A DNA stretch of 64,000 nt from Gnetum montanum. Lineage: Eukaryota > Plantae > Gnetophyta. Positions 25,950-59,999 of the stretch are shown piece by piece (the first letter of the stretch is position 1; every line of letters begins with the position of its first letter). The translations under genes and the position numbers were made by a program. The notes under the pieces are model-generated. The model ran no database searches. It was given only the letters and a program-made list of their open reading frames with translations, and was not told where the DNA came from. The stretch is from the NCBI GenBank assembly GCA_015680685.1, contig MNCI01001992.1, positions 18,751 through 82,750 on the forward strand, written 5' to 3'.

Positions 25950-28020
25950 TTTTTCGGATGGTTTGTACAAAATGACATCCAAAATTGGTCAGTATCCTTA
26001 AATACAAAACCAGGCCGGTTACTATACAAAATGGTCTTTCAGAAAGGTATAGACAAAGGGAAGATAACATCTTCCTGTTGGAAATATACAGGAAATACAC
26101 AAAATGGGAAATTTCCTCTGCCATCTGGGGGAGAGCGCATAATCGGTGCGATGCTAGTGACTAAACAAGAGGGAGCCCGTTTTTTAAAGAGAACTTGAAG
26201 AACAGATACAAGCGAAGCAATGTAGGACAAACTTATAAATGCCTATGGGAATCACATGAGGTAGATAGGGTAGTTCATATTGTGGACCAGGGCAATAATT
26301 GCCCTATTCTTAATCCTCTGCAAGACTTCATATATGGCTGTGACAATTTTAAATTATTCTGCTACACGTGGATTTTTCTTAGGGTGGAGGGTGTATGTAG
26401 GTTTCTTAGCTTGCTTCGTGGCCAGCTCTTTCTTAGCGATGCATTCCACTAGGTTCATCTCAGGCTGATTTGTGTTGTTCTCATTCACAAGTTCTATGTT
26501 GGCTTCATTCTCATGTCATCCTCCTCATTGGTTGTGGGGGAGGGGGGGAGGAGGAGAGGTTGGTCCCTTATATATTTTTCATTGTTGTCCTCCTAAACCG
26601 GCCTTGATATGGAAGGGTTCACACCTTCAGCCAGCTCACCTTTGCTTCATTGAGTATATTCTCTTGGCATGCCATCCTCTTGTGCTCCCATGCATAAGGG
26701 GATCTTTAGCCTCAGTCTATTTTGCTTTGGTAGTTGTCTAGTCTTTTGGAGTGAGAAACCTTCTGTTTTGTCAAACCTTCACATTGAGCTTGTTGTGAGA
26801 GCTCTATCCTTCTAACCCTAGAAGAGGATGGATGCTGTGACCTCTGAAAACTTGGGACATGAGCATGTATGGTGTTGTCCCATAGAATGGATGTTGCCAT
26901 GTTCCATAATGCTACGAAAAGATTGGACTGGCTGGTTGTATTCTTCTTCAAGCCTTGAAGGAAGAAATTTGAGAGGTTCATTGTTTGTCCATGTTTTATA
27001 CTTTTGAGAAAGGTGAAATTTAGCTCCTTGAGCATAGAACCATTGCTTAATTGTATGAAGTATCTTTTGTTTTTGTGTTTGTGTTTGTTTTTTTTTTATT
27101 TTTATTTGTGGAGTGGTCAGGTTATGTGAGAGTGGTGGTATTCAAAACCACAACGACCTGCAATGGAAGGTGGGATTCAAAACCGCTATGACCTGCAATG
27201 GAAGGTGGGATTCAAAACCGCTATGACCTGCAATGGAATGTGGGATTGCAACACTTGGCAATTAGCACTTCTGGGGGCATTTGGTAACAAAATCAACGAT
27301 GTCATGCATTCCATGGCATGTTAGGACAAGAATTTTCCCATCATTAGGGATCCCTAACATATGCACCATTGTGTCTTAGTCAAAGAGTATTTCTCTTCCC
27401 TTGAAAATAGTGCTATATCCTCTCTAGTTTCTAACAAAGGGGGAGGAGTTAATGTCTCTATTCCCATGAATTCACGGTAGTAGTTTTGCACATCCTGCAT
27501 TTGTGATTGACAACCAAAGCATGCCATCGTCCTGAAATCTGGCAACATTTGGTTTGAATGTTAGTGTTATTCCCATAACAATTGTGAGCTCTGCCTAATC
27601 ATAGAGATCTTGGCTAGCAATAATGGAGGGGAGGGGCAAATGATTCAAGCCATCAAGCATGACATCTGGTATAATGGTTTTGACAACATTTTTAACTGCA
27701 TTGTTGGTAGTTTGATCATGATGATCATTAAAATTTGGCACTGGTGATAGTTTGTGTATTCTTACTTGGTGATCTGGGCATTCATAAGCAGTGCAATATG
27801 AGTATGACTACGATTGCCAACAATGTTAAAGCCTTTAGTTAGAAACCCGATGGAAGTATCCAAGATCACTACTGCTAGCATGCCACAATTATGGATGCAA
27901 TTTGTGTTTATCCTGCCCATGCTTGTGCCCCTTAATGAATGCCATTTTCCAAATGAGGCTGCCCAATAGTAGAAACAAGTAGCATGAAAATAAGAATCCT
28001 TACCTCCCTTGCTTATGTGA
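25950..28020 (-). mobile_element. LINE copy A: old 3' fragment with PMD-like domain and partial J-domain
   Basis: Hand translation: PFVRN*RGYSTIFKGREILFD*DTMVHMLGIPNDGKIL, then YFIQLSNGSMLKELNFTFLKSIKHGQTMNLSNFF, then KKPTYTLHPKKNPRVAE*FKIVTAIYEVLQ. Boundaries approximate. Confidence 0.7.
27141..27245. repeat. Tandem repeat, 35 bp x 3
   Basis: TTCAAAACCGCTATGACCTGCAATGGAAGGTGGGA head to tail without spacers, inside LINE copy A. Confidence 0.92.
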
Positions 28021-29099
28021 ATATACTATATGTTTTTTTAATGAAATTGGTCCAAATACTTCTATGATTAAAAATCCAAACCAAGTACATTTCCAGATAC
28101 TTCTATGATTAAAATCTCCTTTTGGAATATTGGCTTTCCATGGACAAAACATCCAAAATCAACGTTGATTTGACAGTAACAGGTCACACAGTGGCATCTA
28201 AGCGTCATGCTCATATAATATTATGAAATTGATGAATGAAGTTGAAGGAATAATGAAGAACAAAGAAGAAAAATTGTAACTAAATACTTTAAAGATATAT
28301 CTTCATTTACAGAAGCTCTGTATGAACGATTATTAAATAAAGTACTTGCCAATGTTGAGGCTAAACTTACAGAGGCTGATGTTGCATTTTTGAATAGTCC
28401 TAGAATTGATGAAGAAATTAAAAATGCTGTTTTTATGATGAAAATTAATAAAGCACTAGGTCTTGATGGTTTTCTATTAGATTTCTATGATAAATATTGA
28501 AATTTTGTAGGCAAGGATATGCAAGATGTGGTACCTAAATTTTGGAGATTTGAAGATATACTAAAATCTGTTAATTCTATAGGATTACTTAATTCTAAAG
28601 AAGTAAAGCGCTTTATCCATCTTTGACTTTAGACTTAGTCGCATACGTAACACTCTTTGTAAAATTATTTTTGAAGTCTTAGTATAAAGAGTAAAAATTT
28701 TCATGTCAACCATCATCAGTGATTGGCAAGTAGGATTTGTGAAATGGAGACAAATTTTGGATTAGATTATTATTGTTTATAACATTTTTCATTCAACTTC
28801 AAAACAAAATAGATGTCTACTTGGGCTTAAATGTGTAAGCAAAACTTATATTCATGTTTTATGAAGCTTTTTGAATGCAATATTACATAAATTTGGATTT
28901 TCTGATTATGGGTATACAATACTTCCATGGTGTTAGGCTATTACTTCACTTTTGGTGTTGCTTTAATAAGGAAGCACATGAAAGATTTTATAGTAGCAAT
29001 AAGCTAAAACAAGGAGATCTTATTTTATCATGGTGGTTGAAGCTTTAGGATGTATGATTAAAGAAAGAGCTAAACAAGGAGAGATTAAGGAATGACAAC

Positions 29100-29586: not shown

Positions 29587-29733
29587 ATCGACTTATGGTT
29601 TACTTGATTGAAGCTTGATGAATAAGTGTAAGGAAGCTTTAGCTATGAAAATAAAGACTTGATGAAGTACCTACAATCAAAAGGGTTGAGGAATGGCAGA
29701 AGTAAAATGGAATGCATAGAGTGCTTTTTTTTT

Positions 29734-29878
29734 NNNNNNNNNNNNNNNNNNNNNNNNNNNNNNNNNNNNNNNNNNNNNNNNNNNNNNNNNNNNNNNNNNN
29801 NNNNNNNNNNNNNNNNNNNNNNNNNNNNNNNNNNNNNNNNNNNNNNNNNNNNNNNNNNNNNNNNNNNNNNNNNNNNNN
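29734..29878. other. Assembly gap (145 N)
   Basis: Run of N. Confidence 0.99.
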
Positions 29879-30269: not shown

Positions 30270-30341
30270 AAGAGGGTTGGTAGATGAACGATAACCTTTT
30301 TTCAAGTGGTTGCACCTATGCTTGAACCTAGGTCTTATGAC
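30270..30341 (-). mobile_element. Au-like SINE, 3' portion (head displaced to 32851-32886)
   Basis: TTCAAGTGGTTGCACCTATGCTTGAACCTAGGTCTTATGAC matches the 17.8 kb copy; the continuation TTGAAAAACAAGAACCTTACCATCACTC lies at 32853. Confidence 0.65.
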
Positions 30342-32850: not shown

Positions 32851-34349
32851 ACTTGAAAAACAAGAACCTTACCATCACTCCAAATGAGGCCCTTCTTTTT
32901 ACTGTGGTTGGAAAATTACAATTAATTCATAGTTGTCTTCAATTTGAACCACTACCCTAAAGGAGATAGTAAAGAGATTAGAAAAATTAGAATATCATTT
33001 TCTTTAGTAGGATTTGGAAGAATAAAAAAATCATCGATTGAATTTGGATACATTTTGTCATCCATGAGAATGTGTTAGACCTGGACGTCAAAAATTATAT
33101 TATTTGAATATGACTCTTTTATGAAAGCTAGCTTAGAGAATTATGAATGAAGATGCCATGTGTGTTAAAGTGACAAAGACTAAATATGTGAGTTACATTA
33201 AAAAATTTTCTAGTAGGATCACATATTATTGGTGCTTCCACAATATGCACAAGACTTGAAAAGTACATGCATAGATAAGAAAATATCATATGAAATCTGA
33301 AGATGTTGAGGTGTGGATATGGAAAAATAAACATTCATACAAAGTTACAATTACTTATAATACTTCATGCACAAGTCAACTAGATTAAAAACCTATTCAA
33401 TTGAAGAAAGTAGTCTAATTCTTAAAGTTCATATCTTTTCTAAATTGGTATGAAAGGGAAAATTTTAACAATTAATAATTTGTTAAAATGAAAATGGATG
33501 ATGGCGAATAGATGATGATGCTTCTGTAAGAATTCTTAGTAGATGTTAATCATTTCTTTCTGTACTTCCTCGCAATTGGTTATATTTGGAACAAGATCTT
33601 ACAGCAGCATGGACTTGGATTGGTGGTATTTGACACATGAATAAAATCTGGAGTATTTTGCTAGTACATGTGATGTTTCAAATTTAGAAAGTAAGAAATC
33701 GATCTAGATAGAGTGTGCAGTAAAAAATTGGAAAGAGAATGTGATATTTAAAATGGAACTTGACTGCCTAAATTTTTGAGCCTTACAGAATTATAATTTT
33801 TATTTCCGAACTTAGGATTAGATTGATACCTTGAGATGATTATCTTATTAGAAATTTGATTCTATCATTTTGGTTAATCCTTAAGATCCCAAGACTAATC
33901 TTGTTGTACTTCAAATCTTTTTTATTAATATGTTATGTTTTTTCAGAAAAAAAAAACTTGTGATTCAGAACAACTATTCACAAATCATAGTGTCTTGTGA
34001 CTAGGTTTTATGAGCCAATCACAAAAGTAATTACACCTCATCATGGAAGTTTATAATGATTCATGAATTGAGAGAAATAACAAGGATGGATTACTATCTT
34101 AATACATCTCCTTAATTCATATTTCATCATACACAAGCTCTAAGTTTGTTACCAAGTATTCTACTTGGTTGTCAATACGATATATAACCACCTAGCAAGT
34201 AGGATAAATACCACTCCAAACATGCACAAGCTCTAAGTTTGTCTGTGCATGTCATGTGCTTGCAGGAACAGATCTTCTTTGTAGTTTTTTCAAGCATGCA
34301 TGTGTATTAGAGTAAATGAGCCATTTGTCTAGGTTTTTTGCAAGCTTTG

Positions 34350-35340
34350 TTTTTTTTTTTTTATAAATTTGAGAAGAATTTGGGTTGTCATATTATAAAC
34401 ATTTCCACATGATCATATGCACACTCGTGAACAAAATTGGGGAAGAAAGACCCCCTTTATGCACAGCCTGTTGTGGGGGGTGCACGGGCACGCGGGGGCA
34501 GGGAGATGGTGTGGGGAAGAAGAACCCCCTTGAGTAACAAGGTAGCCGAAAGACCCAAAGGGGCAAAGCCAAAGACCCCATTCCCATCAAATTCCAGACA
34601 TAGGCCCAACCTAACAAAGACTCAAAAATAGCAATGTGCCATACTAGGCACTAGACTCGTATTGATGTAATACCTTTTCAACCAAAAACAGTTTAGGCCT
34701 GAACCTAATGAACCAACGAAATGGAAACACCACAAACGCAACAGCGGGCCAAAGGCCCCCACTATCAATAGCCAACTCTAAAGCTATCTTGGTAGCCTTG
34801 TACAAGGGTAGATAGTCTGTTCTTGGGCATGAATGACATCCAACACTGCTCGATGACACACTCTCACCACAAATGTTGTAGCTTTTTGGAATTCTTTGTA
34901 TTTTTCCTCCCTATGCATGTGTTCAACATCATTGCTAGTGCCATCCAGGTGAAGCTTGGTTGCAGTCCTCCTTATGTACCTGCGAGGGCGGGCCAGGCAG
35001 TGTTGTGATTCACATGCACAATCACATATAGGCATTTGCCTTCTTGCAGCCAACAGTGTGAATTGGCATCATGGGTTTTGTCTATTGCTGTTGCAATTGC
35101 TTTTCCTCAAGTCTATCCTTCTCCTTTTGCTCCTACTTGGCAGGCTCCCTTTCCCTGTGTTCTTGTTCTTCCCACCACAACTCTTCCCTGATCTTCCTAG
35201 GCAGATCATCTTCTCGTTCATTTCTGATGGCCACCTCATGCAGTTCCCTTTGGGGTTGGTAGGGGTGAATGTTGTAAAGTTTTCATCCAACTGTTCTTAT
35301 GCTATTTCCTTTCTTTTTTGTGTTCATGGAGCAGATATTT
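34350..35340 (-). mobile_element. LINE copy B: 3' fragment with coiled coil and J-like domain
   Basis: Poly(T) at 34350-34362. WLQEGKCLYVIVHVNHNTAWPAL/RYIRRTATKLHLDG...REEKYKEFQKATTFV. Confidence 0.75.
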
Positions 35341-35362
35341 TTGTTGGTAACAACTTGTTTGA

Positions 35363-36037
35363 TTGAGAGATGATTGGGTTTTGTATTAGTATTGGCATCG
35401 AACAGTACAAAACAGGGTGTCTATTAGATGTGTCAAAACTTGGGCAAAATTAGGTGATCATGGACCGTACAAAAAGGGGCCATGCCACCATTCACTATAC
35501 AAAATCTAGCAGCCCACCTGCACTCCACCTTTTAGCAATATATAACCACCCAAAATAATGGACTAAAAGATATAAAACACTCCTCCCCTTGGTGTGAGCA
35601 AATCCAGGGAGCTATCCCCCTCCCAGTGCAGGGACACAGAACTAAAGACTGAAAATATACCATAGATGGCAGTCCCCAACCCAACTACTAAGGGGTGCAG
35701 TGTGCAAATGAAGAAGCATCAATTATGCATGCAGGCGACGAACTTACTTTCCTCATCCTTCTGCAGAACATCATAGATATTTGTGAGCATTTTGAACGCC
35801 ACTCTTCCTCCTCGGCTCTTATCTGGGTGGAAGGTTTTGGAGAGTCTTCTGTAATTTTGTGTGATTTCTCCGATGCTGTCTGTCTCGTGAAGCCTAAGGT
35901 CTCAAAAGCCCAATTTCCAGAATTAAGGATCCTATTCCTTACTGCATTTTACATATCAGCTTTCTTCTCCTCCAAATTCTTCAGAAGCTCATTTCCAACG
36001 TGTGTTGTAGACTGGGGCTGCTTCCTTCTCTCCCTCC
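35363..36037 (-). mobile_element. LINE copy C: 5'-truncated insertion encoding a J-domain with intact HPD
   Basis: Identical 18-bp TSD TGGTAACAACTTGTTTGA at 35345-35362 and 36038-36055. RILNSGNWAFETLG/LHETDSIGEITQNYRRLSKTFHPDKSRGGRVAFKMLTNIYDVLQ with one frameshift. Confidence 0.8.
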
Positions 36038-36545
36038 TGGTAACAACTTGTTTGAGATAGATGTGTTTTAACAGTTTATGAGGCATGTTAGTCTTATTGA
36101 TTACTCTGGGAAATGATAGTACCAATTATTTTTTGATGATAGTCAGTTATTGTTATAAAAAGCCTTGGTATTATAGCCAAATTTGCGTTGCATCCTCAAT
36201 ATGAGTAGATAAAATACTTGTTTTTTTCAGCTCTTGTGCGTACATACTATAGTGCATGAAATAACCCTGAATTGACATTACTGAAAAATACAACACTTGT
36301 TGCCCCAAGTTAAAAAGATAGGTTTAGATGTTATGCGGTTGCTGGCATATTGTTTTTACTTTGCATGGAGAGAACTCTTGTATCATATTATATCTTCACA
36401 TTTTAAAATTAAAATTATGCAAACAAGTAGTGGGTTATATCTGGTTTTCTTACAAGACGTGAATGTAAGCAAAAACAATGTCTCAAGTTAACTTTATTCC
36501 TGTCAATATGAAATTTAATTATCTGTTTTATTTTATATTTTGCAG

Positions 36546-36595: not shown

Positions 36596-37815
36596 GTAAA
36601 TCTCAGTTTTTTCTTTTCTTTTCTTCTGGAAGAAGTTTTTGGTCAACATATAGTTTGTTTACCTGAGATACCTAGTTCTCTTCAGCACTGAAACTTAAAG
36701 ATTGGACATAATTTTTGAAAGTCAAAATGAATCAACTAGGGCATTGACATACTTTCTTGTATGAATATTTATTTAAGGGTCCATAAGAGAATGTTTATGA
36801 GAAAACAATAGGATTAAAAAAAAAGTCTAAGTTACATGCATCTGTTGTTAAACCTGGAGATTGGAGTTTAGATTTGTGTAACATGTTTGTTAATCAACTG
36901 CATTAATGCAAACTTAACATTTAAAATAGTTTCTTCTTTTAAACCATTGAGCAGACTGTCTTGACTATGTTGAAAGCTTGTAGTTACCACTTAGGCTAAC
37001 CTTCACATTAATGAAAACTCTGATGATACGAATAAAGGCAGAGAGGATGTGTAGTAAAAATGCAAGACTTGCATGGGCTAAAACTACTAGCTTTCAAGAT
37101 ATGAATGCTTAAATTTAACATGAGAGAAACAAGGAAAAAGCATGTATATAGAATGCAATAAAAATGAATCAAAAGCAATTGACTCATTTAGGACATCATG
37201 CATGGAGAGAACAAACCCTTCTCTATATGCTATTTTAGGGTTGGGTTTTTTAGTAACTACTAAAACCACCAAACATAGTGATGCATTTTATAGAGGAAAC
37301 ATTTGACAATAAGTTGGGATGATTTTGAAACTATAACAACACATGAAATTCAGGTTGGAATCTTGATTCCCACAATCTGGAAGCTTGATCCAGCTCAACA
37401 TGATACAGATTGGTGTTGGAATCTCAATTCTGATTCCAGGCAACTCCAAGCGATTCTTGATCATAATTTCAAGCAATTTTGAGTGATGCCATGTTATTCT
37501 AAAAGATTATGACTTGTTTCTCATATTTTTTTGATATACATTTTTCAAAATTCTGAAAAATCTAACATTTTTTGTTATTTTAATATTGTGGTTCCCAACA
37601 ATTACATACCAAGATTTAAGCGATCTACAGATTAGAACCTCTAAAATGAAAAACGAATCTGCGATCTGATTTACATTTTAGAAGCATGTAGCTACATGAT
37701 ATGAATTAAATATTTTTTGGGGAAATTGAAATGCCTAGAGGAAATCCCCATGCAAAATGTATATGCATCCTAAAATTTAACAAGGGTGGCTTAGGTGAAC
37801 TTCATTTTGTCAATA

Positions 37816-42015: not shown

Positions 42016-42258
42016 ATTGATTTTTTGGTTCGACCATGAGTCATGGCCTAGTTGCAATAGTCACCATGACCTTACCACATGTTGGAATCAGCCAAAAATC
42101 AATTAACACTAGTGGACCCCTGATGAAGACCCTCAAAATTAGTATAATGTTTTTTTTCTCCAATCCTCTTAAAATAGGGGCCTAGACTTACAGTAGCAAC
42201 TAATTAGGATATGACTCATAATAATGGTAGGTTGATGACAAGGCTTATGTACCTCTTT

Positions 42259-45449: not shown

Positions 45450-46402
45450 GTGGGTGGGTTGGGGGAGGGGTCTAGGTTTGATTGGTAGGAATTTGTCACC
45501 AACTAGTTGTCCAATGTGCATGAGCAGGTTATGCTGGCTTCCAAAGCACTCCACTGGGAGCTGTAGGTGAAATATGAGGACCTTGCTAGGGTTACCACGG
45601 AAGTGGAGGCTAGGGTGGGTGTGGAGGAAAGGGTTACTTGAAAGGTGGAGCTGCAAAAGTGGGAACAAGAGCAACAACTACATGCTGAGCAAGAAGAACA
45701 ACGTTGCATGGAGGCTGCCAAGGAGGAAAAGCACCAGAAGGACCTCTAGGAGGCCACCATCAGGAGCGAATTGGAGGATGCCTTGCGTGAGTAGACAAAA
45801 AAGGAGATGCACAAGGAAGAGCACGAGTGAAAAAGAAGGGTTGAAGAAGAGGAATAGTAGGCCAGAGACCTATTGGAGGCACAACAAATGAAGCGAAGCT
45901 AGGATGTTGTGCGTGAGTCAAATGCTCATCGCTGGCTGCAAATGGGGCACCACCCTTATGTCATCATGGACATTAACTGCAATACTGCTTGGCATGCCTT
46001 GCATCGATTCGTTCGGAAAATAGCGAGCAAGCTACATCTTGATGGGGTTGGGGGAGTCGAGGAGAACATGCAATGGGAAGAGCAATACAAACAATCCTAG
46101 GAGGTTGCTGCTTTCGTCACTTCTGAACATTAGCGGGTGGTCCTAGATGCCATCCACGCATAGGAAAGGGCTTACGACCCCTGCACAAGGCTGCCAAGAC
46201 CTCTTTAGCATTGTTTTCTAGGTGGACAATCAAGATCTCATGAGGGAGTGGACATGTAAGTGTGATAACATTCAAGAGAGCCACATGTCCTCTATTAAAT
46301 GAGTCCATTGCCCCTTTTCCTGCCATTAATATGAAGTGGACAATTAGCATATTTAAAAAAACATACATCACCCTCTCACATTGACTTTTCTTGTGGCCCC
46401 AT
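45450..46402 (+). mobile_element. LINE copy E: 3' fragment with coiled coil and J-like domain
   Basis: E/K/R-rich tract then WLQMGHHPYVIMDINCNTAWHALHRFVRKIASKLHLDG...WEEQYKQ (ORF 45909-46100). Left boundary approximate. Confidence 0.75.
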
Positions 46403-46414
46403 CTTTTTGGCTTG

Positions 46415-49400
46415 TTTTTTTTGGAAAATGGTCAGGCTAGATAAATTAATAATAATAAAAATATGTGCAATTAGGACCTAGATCAAAAAATAGGGGAGAC
46501 ATCCCCCCTGGGGACTTAATCCTCGAACACACCACAGTGCCTAGGGACCACCCTTAGGCCATTGGAAAGCGTGAAACCATCAAAGCAAAATGGGCCCCTA
46601 AAATAGGCCTTCTACGACATACTGCATTTGGCTAGGAAGCATTCGAGAAGCATGAAAACAAACCAATTGAAAAAAGATAAGTAGAGAGATAGATCAGAAC
46701 AGGAACTGAACAAAGCCAATCAACCGACACCCCAAAAACAACCACCCCCCAAAAACTCAACAAAAAACCAAAACAACACTCCATTACTCATGGTGGGGTA
46801 GGCTGGAGTAGGCACATCTAGGGTGCACCCTAGAGTGAACCTAGTCAAGAATTTCCCTTTGTTGTTTAGAGGTCATAAATGTTGCAACCTATTGGAACTG
46901 AATGAATTCCTCTTCCTTCCATTGTCTCTCCTCTGTAGGCTGATTTTTCATTTTATTTGGATGGAACCTAGTAGCAACTGATCAGATGTATTGTTGCAGC
47001 GTGGCCTATGACACATTCCTATTGATGCTATAATTATTTAGGGGTAGCATCCCTTCAGTAGCCAATGTTTGGCTTTCGACTAGTGAGCCTGATCAAGCTG
47101 CTTGCTCATCTGTTCCTCTTCAAAAGGGCCCTAGCTCTCTATGCTTTGGCTTCTTTCATAGGACATTTCCTATCCACGTCTTCTTGGAGGATTTTCGTCT
47201 TGATCTCTTGCCTAAGCTCCTTCTTCTCCTGCTAGATACTAGCCTCTTGATGCTTGTGTTGTCTCTGCAGCTCCTCGGCCTCCTCTCGAAGTTGGCGACG
47301 CTCAGCCTAGACCCTTGCCTAAACATCCTATGCCTATTGAAACATAATTACCTCCCATCTAATCCTTTCCTCGTCACGAACCCTGGCCTCCGTTTCTGCC
47401 ATAACCTGCTGAAGTTTGTCTTCTAGATCATTATGCACCTCCCTTCTCCTAGCCTCAATATCCATTGATACCCAAACGCCCCTAGAGGCTACGCTGAGGA
47501 TGACTTCCCAGAAACCCCCGTAGCTAGGGTTGATGATGACAAGGTAGCCTCTTGTAGATGTAGCTTGCAGTAAACATGAGCAAAAGGGATAGGGCGGGTT
47601 GGAGGGTCCAAAGGCTATGTAGTCCACCAAAGGGCCAGAATGAGCCCTGAGTGCTACCCCTTACATTCACGGTGCAGTGACGCTAGAAAGAACTTGGGGA
47701 GATTCACCAGCCATGCATCCCTCATGCAATGCAAGAAGGCAAAGTGAGCCCCTTGCAGTTTCCAAGCGTTGCTAGATTGCACAACGTATTGATCAACTAA
47801 TTTGGCCACCTCTTGCTAGAGGGGAGGTAGCGCAAACTACGGAACTTGCCCACTAGTAGTCTTGGGGATAGGCTCAATGAAGAAACCCTTGGCATATCTT
47901 TGGTCCCTCCCAGTAGGTAGAATGACCTCACTTGACGCTGGCATCCCTAGGTAAGCTACCAACGCTTCCTCAATTAGGGTAATCCGAACCCTTCTAAAAA
48001 TAGTTGCATCCCCCCACCATTACTGAAAGAAACTGCTATGTATGATGTAGGGTTCACTCACGAGAAGCAACAACACTTAAGCCCATTCCATCTCCTTTAC
48101 TACGTCCCAAAGGTACCTCTTCTTATGATACATCGTCGCCTTAGGCTCAAACGTTGACGTAACCCCCATAGCCACTGTTACTTCAACCCATAGTCTATGC
48201 GCTAAGCAAGTGACATGCGTAGGGGTAGGATAAGGTGGGGCACGGAAAGTCTTGGCATTGTGGGCTTTCTAGATTTGCCACAAAACAACAATATGAAAGG
48301 AGTCCCTAGACACATGCAGGGTCAGATTGGTTCGTACTTCAGCCCACACCATAGTAGCTAACAGGCAATGAAGAAAAAGATGAGCCGTTGACTCAGTGCA
48401 TGGGTGACATAATGGACAGTCATCATGATTGATAATCCCCCACACTTTGAGTGACACACATAGTGGTAATGCACCATGCAAAATAAGCCAAGTGAAACAC
48501 TTGATTTTCTTTGGAAGCCACCTCCTCCAGAGACACTTCCAACCATCTTGATTCGGGTATTTGAGCTTGATGGTGTCCTTGGGCGCCTATCCCATCATTC
48601 TTCCTTGAAGCAATTTGTGTGCATGAGCACAAATATTTTGCCACATGTGGGAATCCTTGGGCACTACCACCCAATGCATGTACTTAGAAGCCATGATATG
48701 GGCCCATTGTGGTTTGCTCCTTGAGTCTTGCATTAGTCGATTGATAACAGTTTGATGCCCCATCAAAAGGACATCTTCAAATTTTAGCACCCCTAGGCCT
48801 CTTGCAGCCTTGGGCCATGCCACCGTATCCCAACACACTAAGTGTGGACAGTTTCCACCTTTACCACCAGACTAGATGAAATTCTTGATGATTTGGTTGA
48901 TTTTATTGGTCACCCCCGCAGGTGGAGTGGCAAAAAAGCAACATTGTGGGTAATGGCAAGAAAAACAGAGGAGGTCTAAAGGATCTTACCTTTGTGAGTG
49001 AGAAACCACGTAGTCCAATGACCAACCCATGAAAGGAGTTGGATCAACCATGTCCACATTTTTGTTTTGTTCCATGTAAACATGGGAATACTTAGGTAAG
49101 ACTCATGGTTAGTTCCTGGCAAGATCCCAAGAGATTGACATGCTTGTTGCTGAATTGGTGCTTCCGTGTGGAAAAAGTGCACCGTAGACTTCCACCTATT
49201 TGGTTGTAAGCTAGTTTCCTGTGCCAAATGGTTCAATGCCCGATTAATAGCAAGAGCTTGCAGCACCACGACCCAGGTCATGATGATGGTATCATTGGTG
49301 TAATGTTTAGTAATGCATGTTGTGCCTAGAATTCTGAGTCCTTGAACACCCTCCTCCCTATAGTAAGTTTGCATGGTATCCATAATGATAATAAACAGGT

Positions 49401-52117
49401 AGGGTGAGAGAGGGTTATCCTAGTGTAATCCCCTAGTAGGGGATGGAAACCCCTAGAGTCAACCACATAGATCAAAAGAATAGGTGTTAGTCTTCTAGAT
49501 ATTAATGCAGAGGTGCACAAAATGTTGGTGAATCCCTTTCTTAAGCATGACCTCCCCGAGTGTTTGCCATTGAATAGTATCATAAGCATTTGCAATAACT
49601 AACTTAATGCACATACTAGGGAATGTAAATTGTTGGATGGAATGAACCACTTCTTGTAGCAGGAGAATATGGTCTTGAATGAACCTCCCCTTAACGAAAT
49701 TAGCTTGGTGGGAGCCAATCAAGGTTGACATCAGTGATTGAAGATGACACACCAAATTTTTGTGAACACTTTGAGTAATGTGTTGCACACCTCAATTGGT
49801 CTATAATGAGTAGGGAGAGTGGAGTTGCGAATCTTTGGCAATAAGACAATTCTAGAGCAATTAATCTCCTTTCAAACTTGTTCCCACCTAAGCATGAGAT
49901 TGAAAGTATCTAGCATGTTTTGCTCCAAAACGTCAAAGAATTCCCAAAAGAATTTGATGGACCACTCATCTGGGCCAGGGCTCTAGCAGCCTTAAGTGAA
50001 GCCATAGCACATGAGACTTCCACCATGGAGATGGGGGTGATGAGGGAGATATTGTTGGCTTTGCTGATAACCTTTTGGATTGGAATAGCAAGAAGGGAGG
50101 AATCTCCCTTAATAGATTGTGTTCTAGAAAATTTGTATTTCTTGTGCAATGTCCTATGGTTTATGTAGGCGGGTCGACCCTTTGAAAATGCTATTAATTC
50201 ATTTGCCGTGACAATTAGCCTTGGCCATTGCAAAGAAGAAATGAGTATTTTGATCCCCCTCTTTGAGCCAACACACCTTGGACCTTTCCTTCTAGTATTG
50301 GTCCTCCTCCACATCCAAACTTTGAAGTTCCATGAGCAGGTTATGCTCCTCTTCATCCAAAAGTTCCCCATTTTCCTACTTGGACTAGATGGAAGCCAAA
50401 TGGTGTTGAATTCTACTCCTGGTACCTTGGAAAGAGTACTTCTAGGTCACCTGTAAGGTCTGAATTCATTTCTTTAGGCAATTGAGGCCTTGTTTGAGGA
50501 AGTACCTTGGGTTAGTATTGGTAGTAGGATAGAAAGCCCAAGTATCTTCAACCAATTGACACAACCAACTTTTGGACAGCCATGCTCATTCAAACCAAAA
50601 AGGAGCCAGTGGGTTTTTTTGGGGGGATGGGGGTGGGGTTGGGGGTGTCCAAGGGGGGATAATCAAACAAATTAGCGCTTGGTGATTCAAGGCTTACCGT
50701 TCCCAGCATTGAACCAGAACCTCATATCTAGTGAGTAGTTTGGCATGAACCAAGGCTTTGTCAATGTAGGACATAAGGCCATTGTGGCTACTCCTCCTAT
50801 TGCTCCAAGTGAATTGGCATCCCCTAATGTCAAGATCCACTAGATTATGCCTATGCAAGAATTGCAAAAATCCAACTAAGGTTGTTGGGGAGCTAGTAGG
50901 TTGATCCTCTAAAATCAGAGTTTCAGCAAAGCTTGTGGGGGATGTGGTTTCTACCCTATCATCAGCCAAGGCATTGACATGCAACTCGTGGTTAGTAGAG
51001 GGGGCATAGGGCATTGAGGAGCCATTCCCGGCTTTAGCTCCCATATTCAATTTCTCATTAGAACCTTGGGAAGATGTATTTTCTGGCCTTGTTGGAGGGG
51101 GAGGCAATGGTGACACCTTCTCCTTTTTCCCCACCAGTAGCCACCCACCCTCATCCATGTTTCTTTTCGGCCCTTTTAGTCCCTTCGTGGGAGCTTTAGG
51201 GTGCACTCTACACTCATGAGTATAGTGGTTTGTCTTTCATAGGTTGCGTAGGCCATTTGACGCCCACGGGCTTCATGTCTTGGTGTAGGCTCCATTTGCA
51301 GAACATTATCATATTCCACATTTAAGTGTTCCTCTCCTGAAGGCAAGTTGCATATAACTTCCTTTAGGAGTTTTTTAGGGGATAATGATCCCTACATGCA
51401 GAAGTGGGCATAGCCCATGTGTTCCTTCATTTCAGTGAATTTATCAGAGGAGATAAATTCCCCAAATTGTTAAGCCAAAGTTCTTAGGAAACCTTCTGTC
51501 CAAAGCTCCCATGACACCTTGGAGACTTGCACCCGAACAAGAGTGCAGGAGAACAGCTTGGTTTCCTTATGAGCTCCTGGTCGCCAATACATGAGCACCA
51601 AGCCTTGCACACCCAAAAAACTAGGGCCCCCCCAAAAGGACCCTATCTCTGTCTACAAGCGATTGAAATACAAACAAAAGAAGGTTCCTTGCTAGTGACC
51701 TCACTTGGATTTGGTCAAGGGCCCAAGTAGCAATTGCCCATTTGCTAACAAGGTCAAGCAGAGGCTTGGACCTTGAGGAAACAAAATGGTTAATGAGGCT
51801 AAGCTTCATCATGTGTAGACCCTCCTGGGGAGGGCCCTTGACCGACAACCTCATGGTAGCCCCTTCCCAAACAATGGCATTAATGTCCCCAATGCTTGGC
51901 TGCCAAGCCCCAACCCCCCCATCATTGGGTTGTTGGTCTGTCCCTCGTCTATTGCTACCAGTACCGCTCTCGCCAAAGATGCATGTTGCATCCCCACCTG
52001 CTTTCTCATTAAGGTCCTTTGTGGCCCCTCCACCTTTGTGCCCATTGTTCTCGCTCCCTTTCCACTCCTCTTCCCCCTTGTGCCTGCCACTGCTACTCTT
52101 GCTCATTGCTCTTCTTG
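46415..52117 (-). mobile_element. LINE copy F: near full length; ORF1, partly deleted APE, RT, zf-RVT, PMD-like, coiled coil, J-like
   Basis: DUF4283 (DRDRVLLGGP), FTWSNRR, RT motifs, CPLCHPCTESTAHLFLHC, then LGMPASSEVILP and YI*SVATRFHPNK...KEEEFIQFQ*VATF. TSD CTTTTTGGC(T/A)TGTTTT at 46403-46418 and 52118-52133. Confidence 0.88.
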
Positions 52118-53479
52118 CTTTTTGGCATGTTTTAAGTCCCTTTTACTTTATAAACTAAGAGGGTTTCTAATATATTTTTGGCTTTTAATCTATTTTCCAT
52201 GTTTACTATAATTTATCTAGCAAAAATTATTAATACTAAACTTTTTGTACAACCAACATTTTACACATGTCGAGCCAGTCATAACGAGCATAAACACATC
52301 GTAGCTACCATGTTAGAATTAACATTTTAATCAAATTAAAGAAAATAGGAGCCACAATGTATTTTTTAATCGTCTAACATTAAAATCTCAAAATTTATGT
52401 CTTGAATTGAGACACTAATTATAGATCTATTCTCTATATGTAAAATTGAGTTGGTCCACCAACTTTGAGCGTGATTTGGCAACATTGAATTTTGGATGTA
52501 TTTTAGTTAATTAATTATTTAATAAATTAAAAATTGTAACTAAACACCAAAATACACCATGGATCCACATTATATTAATTTCATACTATTATTCTAAATT
52601 GATGTGTTAGAGTTGTCCATCCTTGTTATATATAAAGCTTAAAATAATAAATAATTAGAAAGAAATTAGAAATAAATAGTAAACTTGTGTATGTCACCGA
52701 ATCAAACGTCTTCATATTAACATTGAAGCGTTAGACACATCTACAAAAATTTATAAGCTTTAAAACAAGTTCAAGCCTTCAAGCCTATGTATTTAAAAGA
52801 GTATTAATGTCACATGTAGTTGTAGTTAGGTTGCAGTAGCTAACAAAACCTCACAAGCTATACCTACATGGCAGCTGATCAAAATTTGAATGCCATGAAT
52901 CGTGGTTGCATCCTGCCAAAAAATTTCAAATAGTATGAGTTGTGGTCTAGTTGGATTTGACTCATGACACTAAGTAAATTTTAAAGACTCCCCGTGGTCC
53001 TCATCGTGATTCGTGGTCAAGTTGTCATATGCAGAAAAATCAATCAAAGACTGAATTCTGAAAAATTGAAGTTTCCACTGAATCACAAGATCCACTGCTG
53101 AACCTACATTTACTTTTTCTGGGGCTGATTTACTGTAACATTTTACTTGTCCTATGTTAACCTCATCCCTTCCCTTTTCCGTTCCTTTAAAATAAATAAA
53201 TAAATAAATGTCCATTGCCTTGCAAATTCTATCTTGAGCTCTAAACCTCATTTATACTATCATGAATTAAGCATCACAAGAGAAAATAGATTATTAATAT
53301 TTTCAGCCCTAATTTTTCTTCTCATACTCAGTCCCTCTTAAGTGCTAGCTTTAAGTTGTCAACCCCAACTTGCTCTTTGAATCCTTGAAGGTGCTCTACC
53401 CATCACTTAGATTTGATTTTATTTAGCAAATTTGGAAGTAATGGTATAAATGTTTCAGTTTTCTCATAAGGGCAGAAAG

Positions 53480-54205: not shown

Positions 54206-54359
54206 TTCGTGTGCTTCCTTATTAAATCCAGACTGAAACTGAAGCAATAGCCTAACACTTTTTTAAGTATTATACATAATGATAAAAAATTCAAATTTAT
54301 GTAATGTGGCATTAACAAATCTTCATATAACACAAACATAAGTTTTGCTTAAATCAAGT

Positions 54360-57300
54360 GTTTTTTTTTGGAAAATGATTGAGTGATTTTATTCCAAAAA
54401 AATAATGTACAAACGTACACAAAAGATCATCAACCGAAGTTGATACACCCCATCCACATGACCCAATGGTCACCTGCAACGTACCGTATGAACACCTACA
54501 TGCTTGCACAACACAACCCTCTCACCCTGCCCGATGACCCTCACCCCAAATATGCAACCCTTGTCCCCAAGAGCAAGGTACATACATGACACATACCCCT
54601 TGGAATGCCTAGGACCACAANGCTATGGCTGAAAGTCAGGGATCTAGGTCGTAGTTCGTCAAGACCACTGGACGTAGTAGTTCAAGGATAGATGCGAATA
54701 GGTAGTGCTGTGGTCCTAGGCATTCCAAGGGGTATGTGTCATGTATGTACCTTGCTCTTGGGGACAAGGGTTGCATATTTGGGGTGAGGGTCATCGGGCA
54801 GGGTGAGAGGGTTGTGTTGTGCANGCCTATGCCTTGGTAGACTACCCTTGGCACCACCTTCTTTGGTACACGATCGTTGGTGCCAGGTGAACGATTGTAC
54901 ACCCTCGCACCATAGCGCGAGGATCACTCCAGGGTGTTGTCCCAATTGTCTCCTATGAAGAGATTCCTAGAAAAAATGGGGCAAATTTATTGGGGAGCTT
55001 TGCCGAAGGTGCTTGAGAAAAGTGAAATGGACCCCCACCAGTTTGTGGGGGTACCCAGATTGCACAAAATACCTATCCACCAAGAGCGCTGCATCTCTCC
55101 AGACCCCTTGTAATTTGGACTTCCAGATGTGCTCGCTAGCAGTCTTGGGAATGTGTCTTGTGAAGAACTCCTGCGCATCATCTTGAGCCCTCGCAATTGG
55201 TGCCACAATTTCCCCTGCGTCCTTCATCCCTAGTGCAATTGCCAACAATTGCACTGTAATTTCAATTTTCTTGCCCTTGTATTGTGTAGTGTCTCCCACC
55301 CAGTTGTCGTAGAATTGTTGAGTAGGCAGGTTTGGCTCTCCCTCCCTGCGCTTGAGCATCTCCACCCACTCCATCTATTCAACCAACGCCCATAATTCGG
55401 GCAATCTAGCAAATTTTGTCCATGATGGTTCAAAAAGTAGGCGTTGCTCCATGGCCTCCGTGGCCTCCCTCCATAGCCCACATGCCTCTCTAACCACTAC
55501 CATGGCTGTAGGAAGTGGCTGTCCCCGAAAGATCAGAGAATTCCTATGTTTTCACAGGACCCATAGCATAGCCAGGTGCAAGGAGTCTCTGTGGAAACCT
55601 ATGGTGGGGGATATATGTGCAGCCAGCCACACCGCCTAAGAAAACCAACACCCAAAAATGAGATGATGCAACATTTCAGGCACCTCCTGGCAACATGGAC
55701 AGCTGGCATCCATCTTAATCCCCCTCTCTCAATGTGGCCCTCACTGGCAGAGCCCTATGTTTCAGCAACCATTTGAACGCCTTGATCTTTTTCGAGAGAT
55801 GGCCCTTCTAGATTGCAACCCATCCCTCTTCCTGCGGGTATCAGAATTTGACCAGTTCCTTTGGATGCTGCCCCAACAATTCGAGTTGCTCCACCACAAC
55901 AGCATGGCGGCAAAAATTCTTCCAGAGTTGTGAGCACTCTAGATGAACCTCCCATTGCTGATATTTCTGCCACAACATCTACACCCATGACGTTGCCCCC
56001 TCACTTTGCCCCATGTACTTGTTCATCAAACGTTGTGTGCCCAATGCCATCTCGTCTCCAAGTCCCAAAATACCAATGCCCCCTGCCAGTTTGGGCTACA
56101 CTGTAACCATCCACGACACTAGGTGCATTTTCCTGCCCCCTTTACCTCCTGACCACACAAACTCCCTTACAATGCTATCAATCTTTTGCACCACTGTGGC
56201 CAGAGGTGTTGCCATGGATGTTGTAAATTGGGCAATTGCCATTAGGACCGTCATAGGCAACACCATCTTCCCTTTCCTGGACAAAAAATGACTAGTCCAA
56301 AGCATAGTCCGTTGTTGCACCTGCTCTATTAGTCCCTACCATGTCCTCTGCCTATGCCAATCAAAAATAGGCATTCCCAAATATGTGTCATGTGCTTGGC
56401 CAAATAGAATGCCCAACGCCTATATAATTTTGGCCTGCACCCTTCCCCTCCGTGTGGGTGCAATAAATGGCTGATTTTCCTTTATTGACTTCTAGGCCTA
56501 CCTCCTACTACATCCTCTCCATTGCCTGTAACAAGGCCTCAGCTTGCGGCATCATAGCCCTGGAAAACACTGTTGTATCATTTGAATAATGGGCTACTAC
56601 ATTGTGCACTCTAGCAACTTGTAGTCCTTGAACATCTTCATCAAGGCAATAGCCTTTAAACAAGTCCATGACCATGATAAAGAAGAGCGGTGACAACAGA
56701 TCTCCCTATCTTAGTCCACATCTTGTTTCAACAAACCCACAGAGCCTCCCATTAATGTCAAGGGAATACTTGCCACTTTGTTGCATTTGAATGTAGAGAT
56801 TGAAAAACGTTGCATCAAACCCCTTTTCTATCATCACCATCCTAGGTGCCGTCTAGCTCACAGTGTCATAGGCCTTGGTTATGTCTAGTTTGATGCACAT
56901 GCCTAGAAATCTAGCCATCTTAATTGAGTGTAAGATCTCTTTCTAGAGTAACACCTGGTCTTGCAGGTATTGGCCCTTAATGAACCTTGTCTAATTCTCC
57001 CCAACCAGCTTCCCCATCAACGACGCAAGTTGCCCAACCAGTAGTTTGGAGAAAACACGCAACAACGTCTTGCAGACCTCGATAGGTTGAAAATGTCTTG
57101 GTGTTGTTAGGTTTGGGACCTTGGGTAGTAGCACCATCCTTGAACAATTTATCTTTCCTAACCTATTGCCAACTGAGAATACTATTGTATGTATCCAACA
57201 AATTAGGCTCCATGAGATCCTCATACTCCCTAAAGAATTCAATTGGCCATCCATCCAGTCCCAGAGCTTTGTTGGACTGCATGGATTTCAAAGCCCGCCT

Positions 57301-59999
57301 TAGCTCCTCCCGTGAGAAGGGATGCCGCAAATTGGAGTTGTCAGCACTTGTGATTGGCAAGGAGATCGGTTCTGTGGCCTACCATCTCCATATGTCTCCC
57401 CAATAGTTCTGCAATGCATCCAGCCCCCTCTTGCTACTTTGTGGGCCTCCCCCATTGATACCCTCTAGCAAATGCTAGATTTTGTTCTTGTGGGCCCTAT
57501 TTTGCTTGGCTGTGTCAAAGAAGAACCGTGTATGCTTGTCCCCTTTCCGCAGCCAAGTCACCCTTGACCATTGTTGCCAGTAGCTCTCTTCCTCCCTATC
57601 CATCTCCTAGAGTTCTCTAAGTAGCTCTTGTTCTTCAACGTCCCCGGCTGCCCCCATTTCCTGCAACCGTTGGATCTCCCGCAATTCCATCTGCACCTGC
57701 TGTCTGTATCCTTGGAAGCTGTACTTATCCAATGCTCTGGCCTTGACACTATTTTTTAGCACCCGCAAACCATCCCCTAGGAATTGTTGAGGCTCCTGTG
57801 CCCCAGTGTAATTGTCCCAAATTGCCACCACCATTGGTTTCAGCCAGGCTTTGTGTAGCCAAGCCCGCTCAAACTTGAATGGCCTGGGCTCCTGCCTCTC
57901 CCCCAATCGGAGCTGGCATAAAATGGACTAGTGGTCTGAAGCTTGTCTCTCCTTTCCCTCCGTCATGATGTCGTATTCTAGCATGAGGCGCTCACTCACC
58001 CATACTCGATTGATCCTAGACTGGACACGATCAGTGCCCCTCCGGCAATTACTCTAGGTGAATTTACACCCCATGATCTCCAGGTCAACTAGCTCATACT
58101 AACGGAGAAACTTGATGCATGCCTCAGCCCTCAGAGGATTAGCGTAGTCATGTCTAGGTTTTTCCCAGTAATAGAGCTGCTGGTTGAAATCTCCCAGCAA
58201 CATCCATCTGGCAAGATTAGGACCTGTTTGAGCTCTTGCATCTAGATCTCCTAGCTTTGCGCCCCATAAAAATTTGTTATCCAGAGATTCGCTTGTGGCA
58301 TGTGGACAGTTTGACTCCAATCAGAATCATCAACAAAATTGATTGGTATTTTGGCCAGAATGGCTAGACCTCTTGTGCGTCCCCTGCTGGGCACCATTTG
58401 GGTTGTCCATCCCTCCCAGATTAGCAACTTCCTTTTGGTCCTTTGCACCTTGGTTTCCTGTAAACAAACTACCTCACAACCTGCCTCCCTAACCATTGTT
58501 CATAGGGTATTTCTTTTGTATGGGGTACCCTGGCCTTGATAGTTCCAGGTGAGGACCTTTATGGAGATGTAGACACATGTCTGTGATACACTTCCCATAG
58601 CATTTGCGGCCCCCCCAAATCTAGATCTCGTAGTGTGAATTTCTTATACGCTGTGGTTTTACTGGGTTGCCCAATCTTGCTATTTAACCTGAGAACCACT
58701 GCGCCAAGCTGTCCCTCCGCTTGCCTAGGTTGGATGTCCTGCATTTTTGGCTTTGCAGAGCCCTGGCCAACTGTAATCCACTCTCCCAATCGGGGTAATT
58801 CAAGTGCTAAATCCTGCTACACAATAGTCCTGGGAACCAATGGGGTGCGGAGAGAGCTAGGAACCTCCTCCATCTCCTCACGTGCAGATGCCCCCTCAAT
58901 TGTGCCACTGGCTGGCAGCGGCTTTGTAACATCCTCCACTAGTGGCATTATATTTTCCTTTGTCTGCCTTTGCCCATCTCCCCTCCCCATTGCGGTTTGA
59001 CCTTGCGGTCATTTGGCCTGGGGTCTTCCGTCTATCGTGGTACTCGACCCCTGCTTCCATATTTGGTCCTTCTTGCCCATGAGATTCCAGCCCTTAGTGG
59101 CCTCTGTTGATCCTCTGCAGCGCTCTAATTTTGCATGCCATGTGCCACAGGTTTTGCACCTTTGGTGCCCCTCCCTACGCTTTGGCAAGTTTTCAAATTT
59201 TATGTGGATCTTCTCTTCTTCGCCAATGGTGTCTAGCACTACCTCTTTAACTAGATCCGGACAACCTCTTTAACTAGATCCTTTGTCCTTAGCAACCTCC
59301 ACATGTAGAAATGGGCGTAGTCCATTCACTTCATGGACTTTGTGAATGCATCAAATTTTATAAATTCCCTGAACAGCCCCGCTAGAGACTTCAGGAACCC
59401 TAGTTCCCAGTACTCCAGCGCCAGATCAAACAACCGGATCTAGACTAGCGTTTGATCAAACAGACCAGTATCTCAATGTGCTCTAGGTCTCTAGGGGGCT
59501 AGGGCCAGTCCACGGGTGTCGTAAAACCATGGACCCCCTAGCAGCACCTTGTCCCGATCTTCCACCGTTGAGAATGTGAACAGCAGCCGATCATTTGCTA
59601 GCCCCCGAACATAGATGTCCTCCAACCCCCACGTCACTTTGACCCATTTTTGGATCAGATCTAGATGCAGCTAGACTCCCTTTGATATGAACTTGCCTAG
59701 TAAGCTCCGCTCCAGTTTCTGTACCGCCTCCTTTGGCAGACGCCCAACTCGAACCTGCATGACCGCTCCATCCTGCGCATAGGTATCAAGACCAGCACCA
59801 TTCGCCTGACCTTCTATGGCCCCACCCTTACTACCTCCTGCAACAACCGATCCTTTGGCCCCTCCTGCCACCGCTCCCATCACCGTCGCACCCGCTCTTG
59901 GTGCCACTGCTGCTGCCGCTCCTGTTGCTGCTGTTGCTATTGCTGCCGCTCCTGTTTCGGTTGCCGTTCCCAGGCCTTTGGTCTTCCTAATTTTTTGTC
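54360..59999 (-). mobile_element. LINE copy G: near full length; ORF1, APE, RT, zf-RVT, PMD-like domain; 3' part mis-assembled
   Basis: Identical 15-bp TSD TTGCTTAAATCAAGT at 54345-54359 and 60000-60014; poly(A); KVLTWN, VVCLQETK, LLGDFN, IKLDITKAYD, CPCC zf-RVT; ORF 54967-55374. Confidence 0.92.

Follow-up and report, generated by a model that had tools for sequence, protein, structure and literature searches.

LINEs are thought to depend on host chaperones, and Hsp70 as well as J-proteins appear in human L1 interactomes; other reverse-transcribing elements need Hsp70 and J-proteins, and the large and small T antigens of polyomaviruses carry a J-domain engaging host Hsc70. Regarding the gain of additional modules, plant L1-clade LINEs with an RNase H added to ORF2 are mentioned in PMC5203782 (citing Smyshlyaev et al., 2013), and a C-terminal viral-type helicase domain is found in ORF2 of insect R1 LINEs (PMC4686597). 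In the literature searched, no LINE combining RT, zf-RVT, a further globular domain, a charged helix and a J-domain was found, in agreement with an earlier sequence-only reading of the locus presented here, which knew of no described LINE with such an architecture. In the window, i.e. the whole stretch of 64,000 nucleotides from Gnetum montanum that was analysed, a canonical LINE on the minus strand (11928-15198) stops about 70 aa beyond zf-RVT, and eight insertions, designated A to H, are old, dead and decayed copies from one group of plant LINEs of the L1 type. With what we judge to be an even chance, ORF2 of this group would run in frame into the globular domain, with the helix/J module made as a separate ORF3 product or via a frameshift and the J-domain bringing Hsp70.

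Stops and frameshifts are found throughout every copy. A six-frame comparison within the window bore out the claim that the eight insertions have coding sequence in common, and almost no similarity between copies is seen at the DNA level in the same window; at least three diverged lineages are present, namely G, the group F/D/E/B/H and the pair of A and C. As judged from their domains, with APE, RT and zf-RVT in ORF2 and a DUF4283-type ORF1, these elements are assigned to the plant L1-clade LINEs: Pfam finds zf-RVT in F at E 2.5e-16, RVT_1 (E 5.9e-5) and Exo_endo_phos (in G, E 2.2e-4) both on fragments and below the cut-off, and DUF4283 weakly (E 0.063). The marks of target-primed insertion are seen as TSDs of 9-32 bp (F, G, C and H), an A-rich 3' end and 5' truncation (C, H, B, E, D and A). 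The borders proposed earlier for four insertions were confirmed by exact TSDs, of 18 bp for C (35345-35362 / 36038-36055), 32 bp for H (42227-42258 / 42627-42658, plus poly(A)), 15 bp for G (54345-54359 / 60000-60014) and 9 bp for F (46403-46411 / 52118-52126). No convincing TSD was found at A, B, D and E, so that their borders are approximate (Table 1). After the J-like region come a 3' UTR of about 200-450 nt and the A-rich end, with poly(A) present in H and B, and the motif CATTTTCCAAAAAAAA is identical at the very 3' ends of F and G, with one mismatch in H. Some copies adjoin one another, C lying beside B and E beside F. For B, many contigs 80-90% alike were found in a DNA sequencing run, and evidence of expression is confined to a few RNA reads; database searches, including HMMER over 1.84 billion proteins, found neither an intact copy nor a database relative.

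Table 1. Coordinates of the LINE copies and of their domains in the window.
Feature	Position	Strand	Evidence
F, full-length decayed LINE: ORF1, RT, zf-RVT, globular domain, linker, charged helix, J-like domain, 3' UTR	46412-52117	-	TSD, Pfam, collinear protein matches to G and D
F RVT_1	49498-49791	-	Pfam
F zf-RVT	48272-48586	-	Pfam, E 2.5e-16
F globular domain, same frame as zf-RVT	47629-48184	-	single HSP with G
F junction: ORF2-frame stop 47489-47491, then +2-frame ATG 47463-47465	47463-47491	-	ATG column common to D and E
F charged helix, about 107 aa, 52% E/K/R/Q/D	47099-47420	-	matches E 45576-45897
F J-like domain, HPN replacing HPD	46844-47045	-	part of profile matching only J-domains
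F 3' terminus motif CATTTTCCAAAAAAAA	46415-46430	-	identical in G
G, full-length decayed LINE with globular domain, without charged helix or J-domain	54360-59999	-	15-bp TSD, collinear with F
G Exo_endo_phos fragment	58254-58499	-	Pfam
G globular domain; ORF continues 55 codons to stop near 54742	54912-55515	-	protein comparison
D, 5'-truncated LINE: RT, assembly gap, zf-RVT, globular domain, helix, J-like domain	37791-41366	+	protein comparison
D assembly gap	38865-38901	+	between RT and zf-RVT parts
D globular domain, one internal frameshift	39571-40134	+	protein comparison
D junction: first ORF2-frame stop 40215-40217, then +2-frame ATG 40262-40264	40215-40264	+	
D charged helix	40370-40723	+	
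D J-like domain, YLD	40748-40954	+	
E, 5'-truncated tail, 5' and 3' borders uncertain: ATG 45531-45533, charged helix 45576-45902, J-like domain 45954-46160 (HLD)	45531-46402	+	
B, 5'-truncated tail: helix end 35083-35248, J-like domain 34826-35028 (HLD, one frameshift), poly(A) about 34350-34363	34350-35340	-	
C, TSD-flanked 5'-truncated tail, second subfamily	35363-36037	-	18-bp TSD
C J-domain with HPDK	35722-35901	-	Pfam DnaJ, E 1.9e-9
H, very short 3' fragment: last J-like helix, 3' UTR, poly(A)	42259-42626	-	32-bp TSD, weak matches, 3' motif
A, 5'-truncated copy, second subfamily: globular halves 27240-27639 and 26885-27065, tandem duplication between; J-domain 26281-26419 (HPK)	25950-28020	-	

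Downstream of zf-RVT, a globular domain of about 190 aa is common to F, G, D and A. In six-frame comparisons within the window, F and G match from zf-RVT into this domain in one HSP (48439-47629, 38% over 271 aa, E 9e-49), the globular domains of F and D match at E 4e-27, and that of A matches those of D, G and F at E 1e-8 to 1e-4. In both the F-G and the F-D comparison, single HSPs cross the boundary, which places the globular domain in the reading frame of zf-RVT, and the earlier statement that ORF2 extends into the additional domains holds for this part, but not for the helix and J-domain, which in D and F stand in the +2 frame behind a stop and an ATG. The designation of the globular domain as PMD-like was not established, five tests being blank or unusable. 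There was no match to Pfam up to E 10, the sole phmmer match among 1.84 billion proteins was a low-complexity false match, a profile search brought up nothing with an E of 0.01 or less, the profile found nothing in the PDB, and the AlphaFold model is of low confidence (pLDDT 48). A language-model lead pointed to DUF1985 (0.88) and PMD (0.84), under the method's bar of 0.9, and D did not reproduce it. To our knowledge, PMD (PF10536), DUF1985 (PF09331) and Transposase_32 (PF20167) have been reported from LTR retrotransposons and MULEs as well as from host genes, e.g. MAIN and MAIL1, and not from LINEs, with which the literature searched agrees; the globular domain is alike by eye and through the one language-model lead, and its membership is unsupported by any profile, sequence or structure test.

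The flanks of the assembly gap in D align to sites in G separated by only four codons (D 38579-38858 to G 56440-56152; D 38902-39283 to G 56137-55759), and they run collinear with F, so that order and strand are continuous across it. The frame of D as written changes across this gap, whose N length is an estimate only, and no claim on the extension depends on it. Another gap (29734-29878), for which no comparator was found, falls in none of the eight insertions and follows a plus-strand LINE RT fragment (28354-28907) at a distance of about 800 bp.

The charged helix and the J-like tail are common to D, E, F and B. In the six-frame comparison within the window, D and E match over helix plus J in one frame (37% over 209 aa, E 8e-28), the tail of B matches those of E (E 6e-17) and D (E 6e-13), the J-domains of A and C match each other (E 6e-6), and H matches D (E 0.002) and B (E 0.008) weakly. 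The J-domain of C reaches 37.9 bits against Pfam DnaJ (PF00226), for a cut-off of 27.8 (E 1.9e-9), and 19 out of its 19 matches to PDB sequences are J-domains; the pieces of A, B, D, E and F had no match in Pfam. A profile made from the tails of B, D, E and F only, searched against 177,635 PDB sequences, matched J-domain proteins in ten cases out of ten (best E 0.0073), with the helix I, helix II and H-x-D segments in register with the PDB J-domains, and hhalign aligns these tails with C weakly (P 0.018), though again in register. The Pfam and PDB matches of C and the four-copy profile thus bear out the J-domain claimed earlier for the tail, and point to a real but divergent one. For the J-like piece of E, AlphaFold gives, at low confidence (pLDDT 63.5), one long helix, no stop-free piece spanning the whole domain. 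The charged helix, of about 110 aa with 45-55% E/K/R/Q/D and one Pro or Gly, is described by composition only, which fits a single charged helix as well as a coiled coil. As for the order RT, zf-RVT, globular domain, helix and J-like domain reported for D and F, it is indeed seen in both, though not in one frame. As corrections to the earlier reading, C, H, B and E are 5'-truncated tails and G has the globular domain only; nothing in the 552-bp tail that follows this domain in G matches the helix or the J portion of any other copy.

In F (209 nt) and D (257 nt), the only copies spanning the junction, the helix/J frame is +2 (-1) relative to ORF2, with an ORF2-frame stop just upstream of it; the ATG at which the helix/J frame begins is aligned in F, D and E, and the ORF of the J-less G ends at a comparable place. 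One continuous ORF2 is no more probable an explanation than a separate ORF3 or a -1 frameshift. Such a continuous frame, in which RT, zf-RVT, globular domain, helix and J-domain would form a single product and the frame change in D and F would be post-insertion decay, seems doubtful without being far-fetched: the linker is poorly conserved, D and F carry further frameshifts (inside the globular domain in D, between helix and J-domain in F), and precedents for C-terminal domains on ORF2 exist in plant L1 (RNase H, PMC5203782) and insect R1 (helicase, PMC4686597), but independent frameshifts with the same net offset are needed in the 210-260 nt linker of both copies, the chance of which is a few per cent by a rough estimate from the local frameshift density, and a stop followed by a conserved ATG stands at the junction, where the ORF of G ends. 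The +2 offset, shared by two copies only, could be decay, and the conserved Met could be an ordinary internal residue.

The helix/J module is part of the retrotransposed unit, as established by the TSD-flanked truncated copies, the 3' terminus that the J-less G has as well, and copy A, in which the globular domain lies on the same strand as a C-like J-domain; the J-like region lies inside the element, upstream of the 3' terminus shared by F, G and H. An origin of the tail as host sequence without a role in the element, be it a 3' transduction, a processed DnaJ pseudogene chimera or a separate neighbouring element, is highly improbable and largely refuted: C alone, with its TSD and without LINE domains, does resemble a 5'-truncated processed DnaJ pseudogene, and copies adjoin (C/B and E/F), but the tail stands upstream of the family's own 3' terminus, the same order recurs in copies with almost no DNA-level similarity, the LINE-specific globular domain is joined to a C-like J-domain in A, and the codon-position pattern of the tail is that of RT. 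Both in RT and in each part of the extension, about 55, 60 and 33% of the bases are identical at codon positions 1, 2 and 3, respectively (chi-square p 1e-12 to 5e-3 across RT and extension parts); dS has reached saturation, and a dN/dS of 0.32-0.36 is obtained where computable. Since third positions are saturated while first and second positions are conserved, as in RT, the extension evolved as protein; the helix/J module was kept under protein-level selection during the divergence of the lineages, and the selection claimed earlier on shared motifs is upheld by this pattern and by dN/dS.

Regarding the HPD motif, it is intact in C only (HPDK), and it is lost in A (HPK), B and E (HLD), D (YLD) and F (HPN). 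Because C keeps HPDK and F and A keep His-Pro, HPD was ancestral. In B, E and D, different third bases are found in the Leu codons at the proline position (CTG, CTT and CTA), which makes Leu the probable ancestral state of this clade; no alternative letter at the Leu codon of B occurs among the best-supported differences listed for its paralogous contigs. E. coli DnaJ cannot do without the HPD proline, and, going by established J-domain mutagenesis, Leu in its place should weaken or abolish Hsp70 ATPase stimulation in the B/D/E clade, which may use the tail as a J-like module. The HLD and YLD motifs, with codons suggesting an ancestral Leu kept by synonymous change, the lack of another letter among the differences listed for the contigs of B, and the established need for the proline would all suit a module that was retained but is not, or never was, an Hsp70 activator, i.e. 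a J-like scaffold, or a helix for oligomerisation, that has some other partner, comparable to HPD-less J-like proteins; with HPDK in C and His-Pro in F and A making HPD ancestral, and with three parallel C-to-T changes in methylated dead copies as a possible origin of Leu, we consider this unlikely.

In the favoured reading with a J-domain bringing Hsp70, ORF2 would continue in frame from zf-RVT into the conserved domain of about 190 aa, followed in two of the three lineages by a module of about 230-260 aa with a conserved Met, a charged helix of about 110 aa and the J-domain, most likely made as a separate ORF3 product or by frameshift rather than as a plain ORF2 tail. Through the J-domain, host Hsp70 would be brought to the proteins or the RNP of the LINE itself, where it could serve folding, assembly, remodelling or import. 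Such an Hsp70 co-chaperone role, like the chromatin- and silencing-remodelling ideas of the sequence-only reading, is an inference. More specifically, and only tentatively, the third LINE protein may be a small coiled-coil J-protein encoded in the -1 frame after ORF2, produced by reinitiation or frameshifting, and recruiting Hsp70 to the RNP or, in the HLD clade, competing with host J-proteins. If so, this would be the first retrotransposon known with its own Hsp70 co-chaperone gene, and, were the module a separate ORF3, it would bear on the translation of multi-ORF LINE RNAs. A LINE carrying its own J-domain would mean that chaperone recruitment can limit retrotransposition enough for selection in cis; the HPD and HLD clades and the J-less G lineage would then offer a natural contrast for the function of the module, which would be a second kind of accessory module in plant L1 besides RNase H.

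Compared with the plant L1 elements carrying RNase H, the present group has the same DUF4283-type ORF1, APE, RT and zf-RVT and has likewise gained and kept an extra module downstream of the RT/zinc-binding region, but instead of RNase H this consists of an unassigned domain of about 190 aa together with a charged helix and a J-domain, the last two maybe in a separate frame. The insect R1 LINEs are alike in that ORF2 has gained a foreign C-terminal domain, and differ in LINE clade, host and domain, with no chaperone link. Polyomavirus T antigens share the principle of a mobile or viral element encoding its own J-domain; there, however, it is N-terminal, in an animal DNA virus and with a strict HPD, whereas in the plant LINE it is C-terminal, after a charged helix, in a non-LTR retrotransposon, and HPD has been lost in one clade.

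The region from 25.9 to 60 kb of the window is a pile of decayed copies of L1-type LINEs (longest ORF at most 180 aa), whose similarity is almost nil when compared as DNA within the window, yet strong and collinear in a six-frame protein comparison of the same region. These comparisons took in natural copies only, as they stand. In copy F, Pfam recognised the zf-RVT domain, part of RVT_1 and, weakly, DUF4283; in copy G it recognised an Exo_endo_phos fragment. On the basis of exact TSDs, the borders drawn for C, H, G and F in the sequence-only reading are correct to the base, while the search around A, B, D and E returned none that was convincing, so that their ends are approximate. H also bears poly(A), and ordinary 5' truncation explains the shortness of C, H, B and E. 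Some copies abut: C stops 23 bp short of the start of B on the same strand (35340-35363), and E lies tail against tail with F (46402-46415), in keeping with LINEs inserting into A-rich ends of earlier copies.

Coordinates of the LINE copies and of features discussed in the text (positions in the window)
Feature	Position	Strand	Detail
Canonical L1-type LINE	11928-15198	-	
Copy A	25950-28020	-	
Tandem duplication in A	27066-27239	-	unit ~30 aa
Diverged LINE RT fragment	28354-28907	+	between A and B
Assembly gap	29734-29878		outside all eight insertions
Copy B	34350-35340	-	
Read pile on B poly(A) tract	34346-34382		RNA run X12
Copy C	35363-36037	-	TSD 18 bp
J-domain in C	35722-35901	-	Pfam DnaJ, E 1.9e-9
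Copy D	37791-41366	+	
Assembly gap in D	38865-38901		between RT and zf-RVT parts
D, globular domain to helix	40113 to 40370	+	257 nt
D, stop in ORF2 frame	40215-40217	+	
D, ATG in new frame	40262-40264	+	
D, apparent duplication	40265-40369	+	~21 codons
Copy H	42259-42626	-	TSD 32 bp
H, 3' motif	42259-42275	-	one mismatch
Copy E	45531-46402	+	borders uncertain
E, aligned Met	45531-45533	+	
Copy F	46412-52117	-	TSD 9 bp
F, 3' motif	46415-46430	-	
F, globular domain to helix	47629 to 47420	-	209 nt
F, ATG in new frame	47463-47465	-	
F, stop in ORF2 frame	47489-47491	-	
zf-RVT in F	48272-48586	-	Pfam E 2.5e-16
Copy G	54360-59999	-	TSD 15 bp
G, 3' motif	54362-54377	-	

Regarding the assembly, the gap within D is flanked by sequences that align to sites of G four codons apart and are collinear with F; the order and orientation of D are therefore continuous over it. 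As written, the frame of D changes across this gap, where the number of Ns is an estimate only, and the claims on the extension do not depend on it. Some 800 bp separate the other gap from the diverged LINE RT fragment upstream of it. DNA runs with four different organism labels contain the F insertion (from 0.91 to 0.35 of the words sampled), and it is therefore old. In the contigs of a DNA run, B-type paralogues are many, at 80-90% identity, and C-type ones are absent. A few reads only of the RNA runs fall on B and C, and they give no evidence of activity. Hundreds of reads of run X12 with long T or A overhangs pile up on the poly(A) tract of B; this pile is a low-complexity poly(A) artefact rather than expression.

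The usual end of ORF2 is shown by the canonical LINE of the same window, where a 224-aa open piece runs across zf-RVT; this LINE ends about 70 aa past the zinc-binding region, with neither globular domain, helix nor J-domain. In contrast to this internal reference, one alignment of F with G (38% over 271 aa, E 9e-49) starts within zf-RVT and continues into a globular domain of about 190 aa, and that of F with D does likewise; the sole stop at a shared position in these alignments is a Trp codon retained in D. In A, the globular domain is split in two halves (E 1e-8 to 1e-4) around a tandem duplication internal to the domain, which a Lys/His/Asn-rich low-complexity run adjoins. The label "PMD-like" once given to this domain is not established. 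Pfam matched none of its stop-free pieces, phmmer, run with the piece from G on 1.84 billion protein representatives, returned one low-complexity false match only, none of the 325 candidates from a profile search with the domain alignment (A3) reached E 0.01, and a profile search of the PDB was blank. The AlphaFold model is too poor to be of use, with a pLDDT of 48, and the ESM Atlas proposed DUF1985 (0.88) and PMD (0.84) for G, below its 0.9 bar, and nothing for D. The DUF1985/PMD resemblance is thus best kept as a lead.

Further downstream, a charged segment of about 110 aa (45-55% E/K/R/Q/D, Pro and Gly almost nil) precedes a J-like tail. From its composition, this segment could be one charged helix standing alone or form a coiled coil. 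Both parts stand in one frame when D is compared with E (37% over 209 aa, E 8e-28); B matches E (E 6e-17) and D (E 6e-13), the matches of F to E and B are weaker, and H matches the last helix only (E 0.002 to 0.008). Compared with E and F, D shows an apparent duplication at the start of the charged helix, with two ELEGL/ELEQ-like units. G, full length with TSDs, has just 552 bp past the globular domain, helix and J-domain being absent.

The tail had been read as a DnaJ J-domain, and this identification is borne out. C passes Pfam DnaJ, scoring 37.9 bits where the cut-off is 27.8, with HPDK present, and its PDB sequence matches are all J-domains (19/19). Pfam returned no match for the stop-free J-like pieces of A, B, D, E and F. 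A profile of the B, D, E and F pieces from which C was left out (A2) matched J-domain proteins in 10 of 10 PDB matches (best E 0.0073), in register at the Y-x-I/L-G-I/V segment, helix II and the H-x-D loop; a chance motif resemblance was rejected as a reading of the tail. Aligned by hhalign, A2 and C match weakly (P 0.018) yet in register, and the AlphaFold model of the E piece, with a pLDDT of 63.5, is too poor to weigh. We accept, from these profile comparisons, that both subfamilies carry predicted J-domains, that of B/D/E/F being very divergent. As A joins a LINE-type globular domain to a C-like J-domain (E 6e-6) downstream on the same strand, C is tied to the LINE, which speaks against a host pseudogene.

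When aligned in the true frame, the copies are identical at about 50-65% of first, 55-73% of second and 30-42% of third codon positions, a pattern common to RT, globular domain, helix and J-domain (chi-square p 1e-12 to 5e-3), so that the extension appears selected as RT is, in agreement with the sequence-only reading. dS is saturated; where computable, dN/dS is 0.36 (J-domain, B vs D) and 0.32 (helix, F vs E). F and G end in the identical 16-nt 3' motif CATTTTCCAAAAAAAA, which H carries with one mismatch, the remaining 3' UTR being unalignable among the three; the RT of the family may recognise its 3' end by this motif. The J-like region lies upstream of this shared terminus. A neutral 3' transduction is very unlikely, since protein similarity combined with randomised third positions cannot be the product of neutral decay, and it was rejected on this ground and on the position of the tail. 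The latter, together with the junction in A and the constant order of parts among copies that have almost no similarity as DNA, also led to rejection of the tail as a separate element. The codon pattern, the position upstream of the 3' terminus and the 5'-truncated copies therefore place the tail within the retrotransposed unit, under constraint during the divergence of the lineages. We regard it as a real and selected accessory module of a plant L1 group.

A single ORF2 had been proposed to run through all these domains, which holds for the globular domain, in frame with zf-RVT, and probably not for the helix and J-domain. At the junction, read from D and F only (n=2), the latter lie in both copies in the +2 frame relative to zf-RVT and globular domain, with a stop in the ORF2 frame shortly followed by an ATG in the new frame. 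This Met is aligned in F, D and E, 13-14 codons ahead of the conserved helix start, and the ORF of the J-less G ends 55 codons past the same conserved block. The offset could also result from decay of a plain continuous ORF2 tail, as D and F both carry further frameshifts and the linker between globular domain and helix is unconserved, but the same net shift would have had to arise in both linkers, with a chance estimated at a few per cent from the frameshift density elsewhere in the copies, and decay leaves the aligned ATG after the stop to be accounted for. A single ORF2 is thus probably not the architecture here; we lean, by a modest degree, towards helix and J-domain being made from an ORF3 of their own or through a -1 frameshift.

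The HPD motif expected in the tails is present in C, while the corresponding residues are HPN in F, HPK in A, HLD in B and E, and YLD in D; one clade (B/D/E) thus appears to have lost the canonical HPD. Its Leu is encoded by CTG, CTT and CTA, which looks like an ancestral Leu kept via synonymous change rather than three parallel C-to-T decays, although the latter may have produced it. Since the HPD proline is essential, as known from DnaJ mutagenesis, and is here replaced by Leu, canonical Hsp70 activation is doubtful for this clade. More generally, the J-domain of the tail would recruit Hsp70.

The papers searched describe no LINE that carries a J-domain. A survey of L1 elements mentions an RNase H variant only and never DnaJ (PMC5203782). 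Beside this RNase H variant, the J-domain module would stand as a further variant of LINE accessory domains, with Hsp70 recruitment as its putative mechanism.
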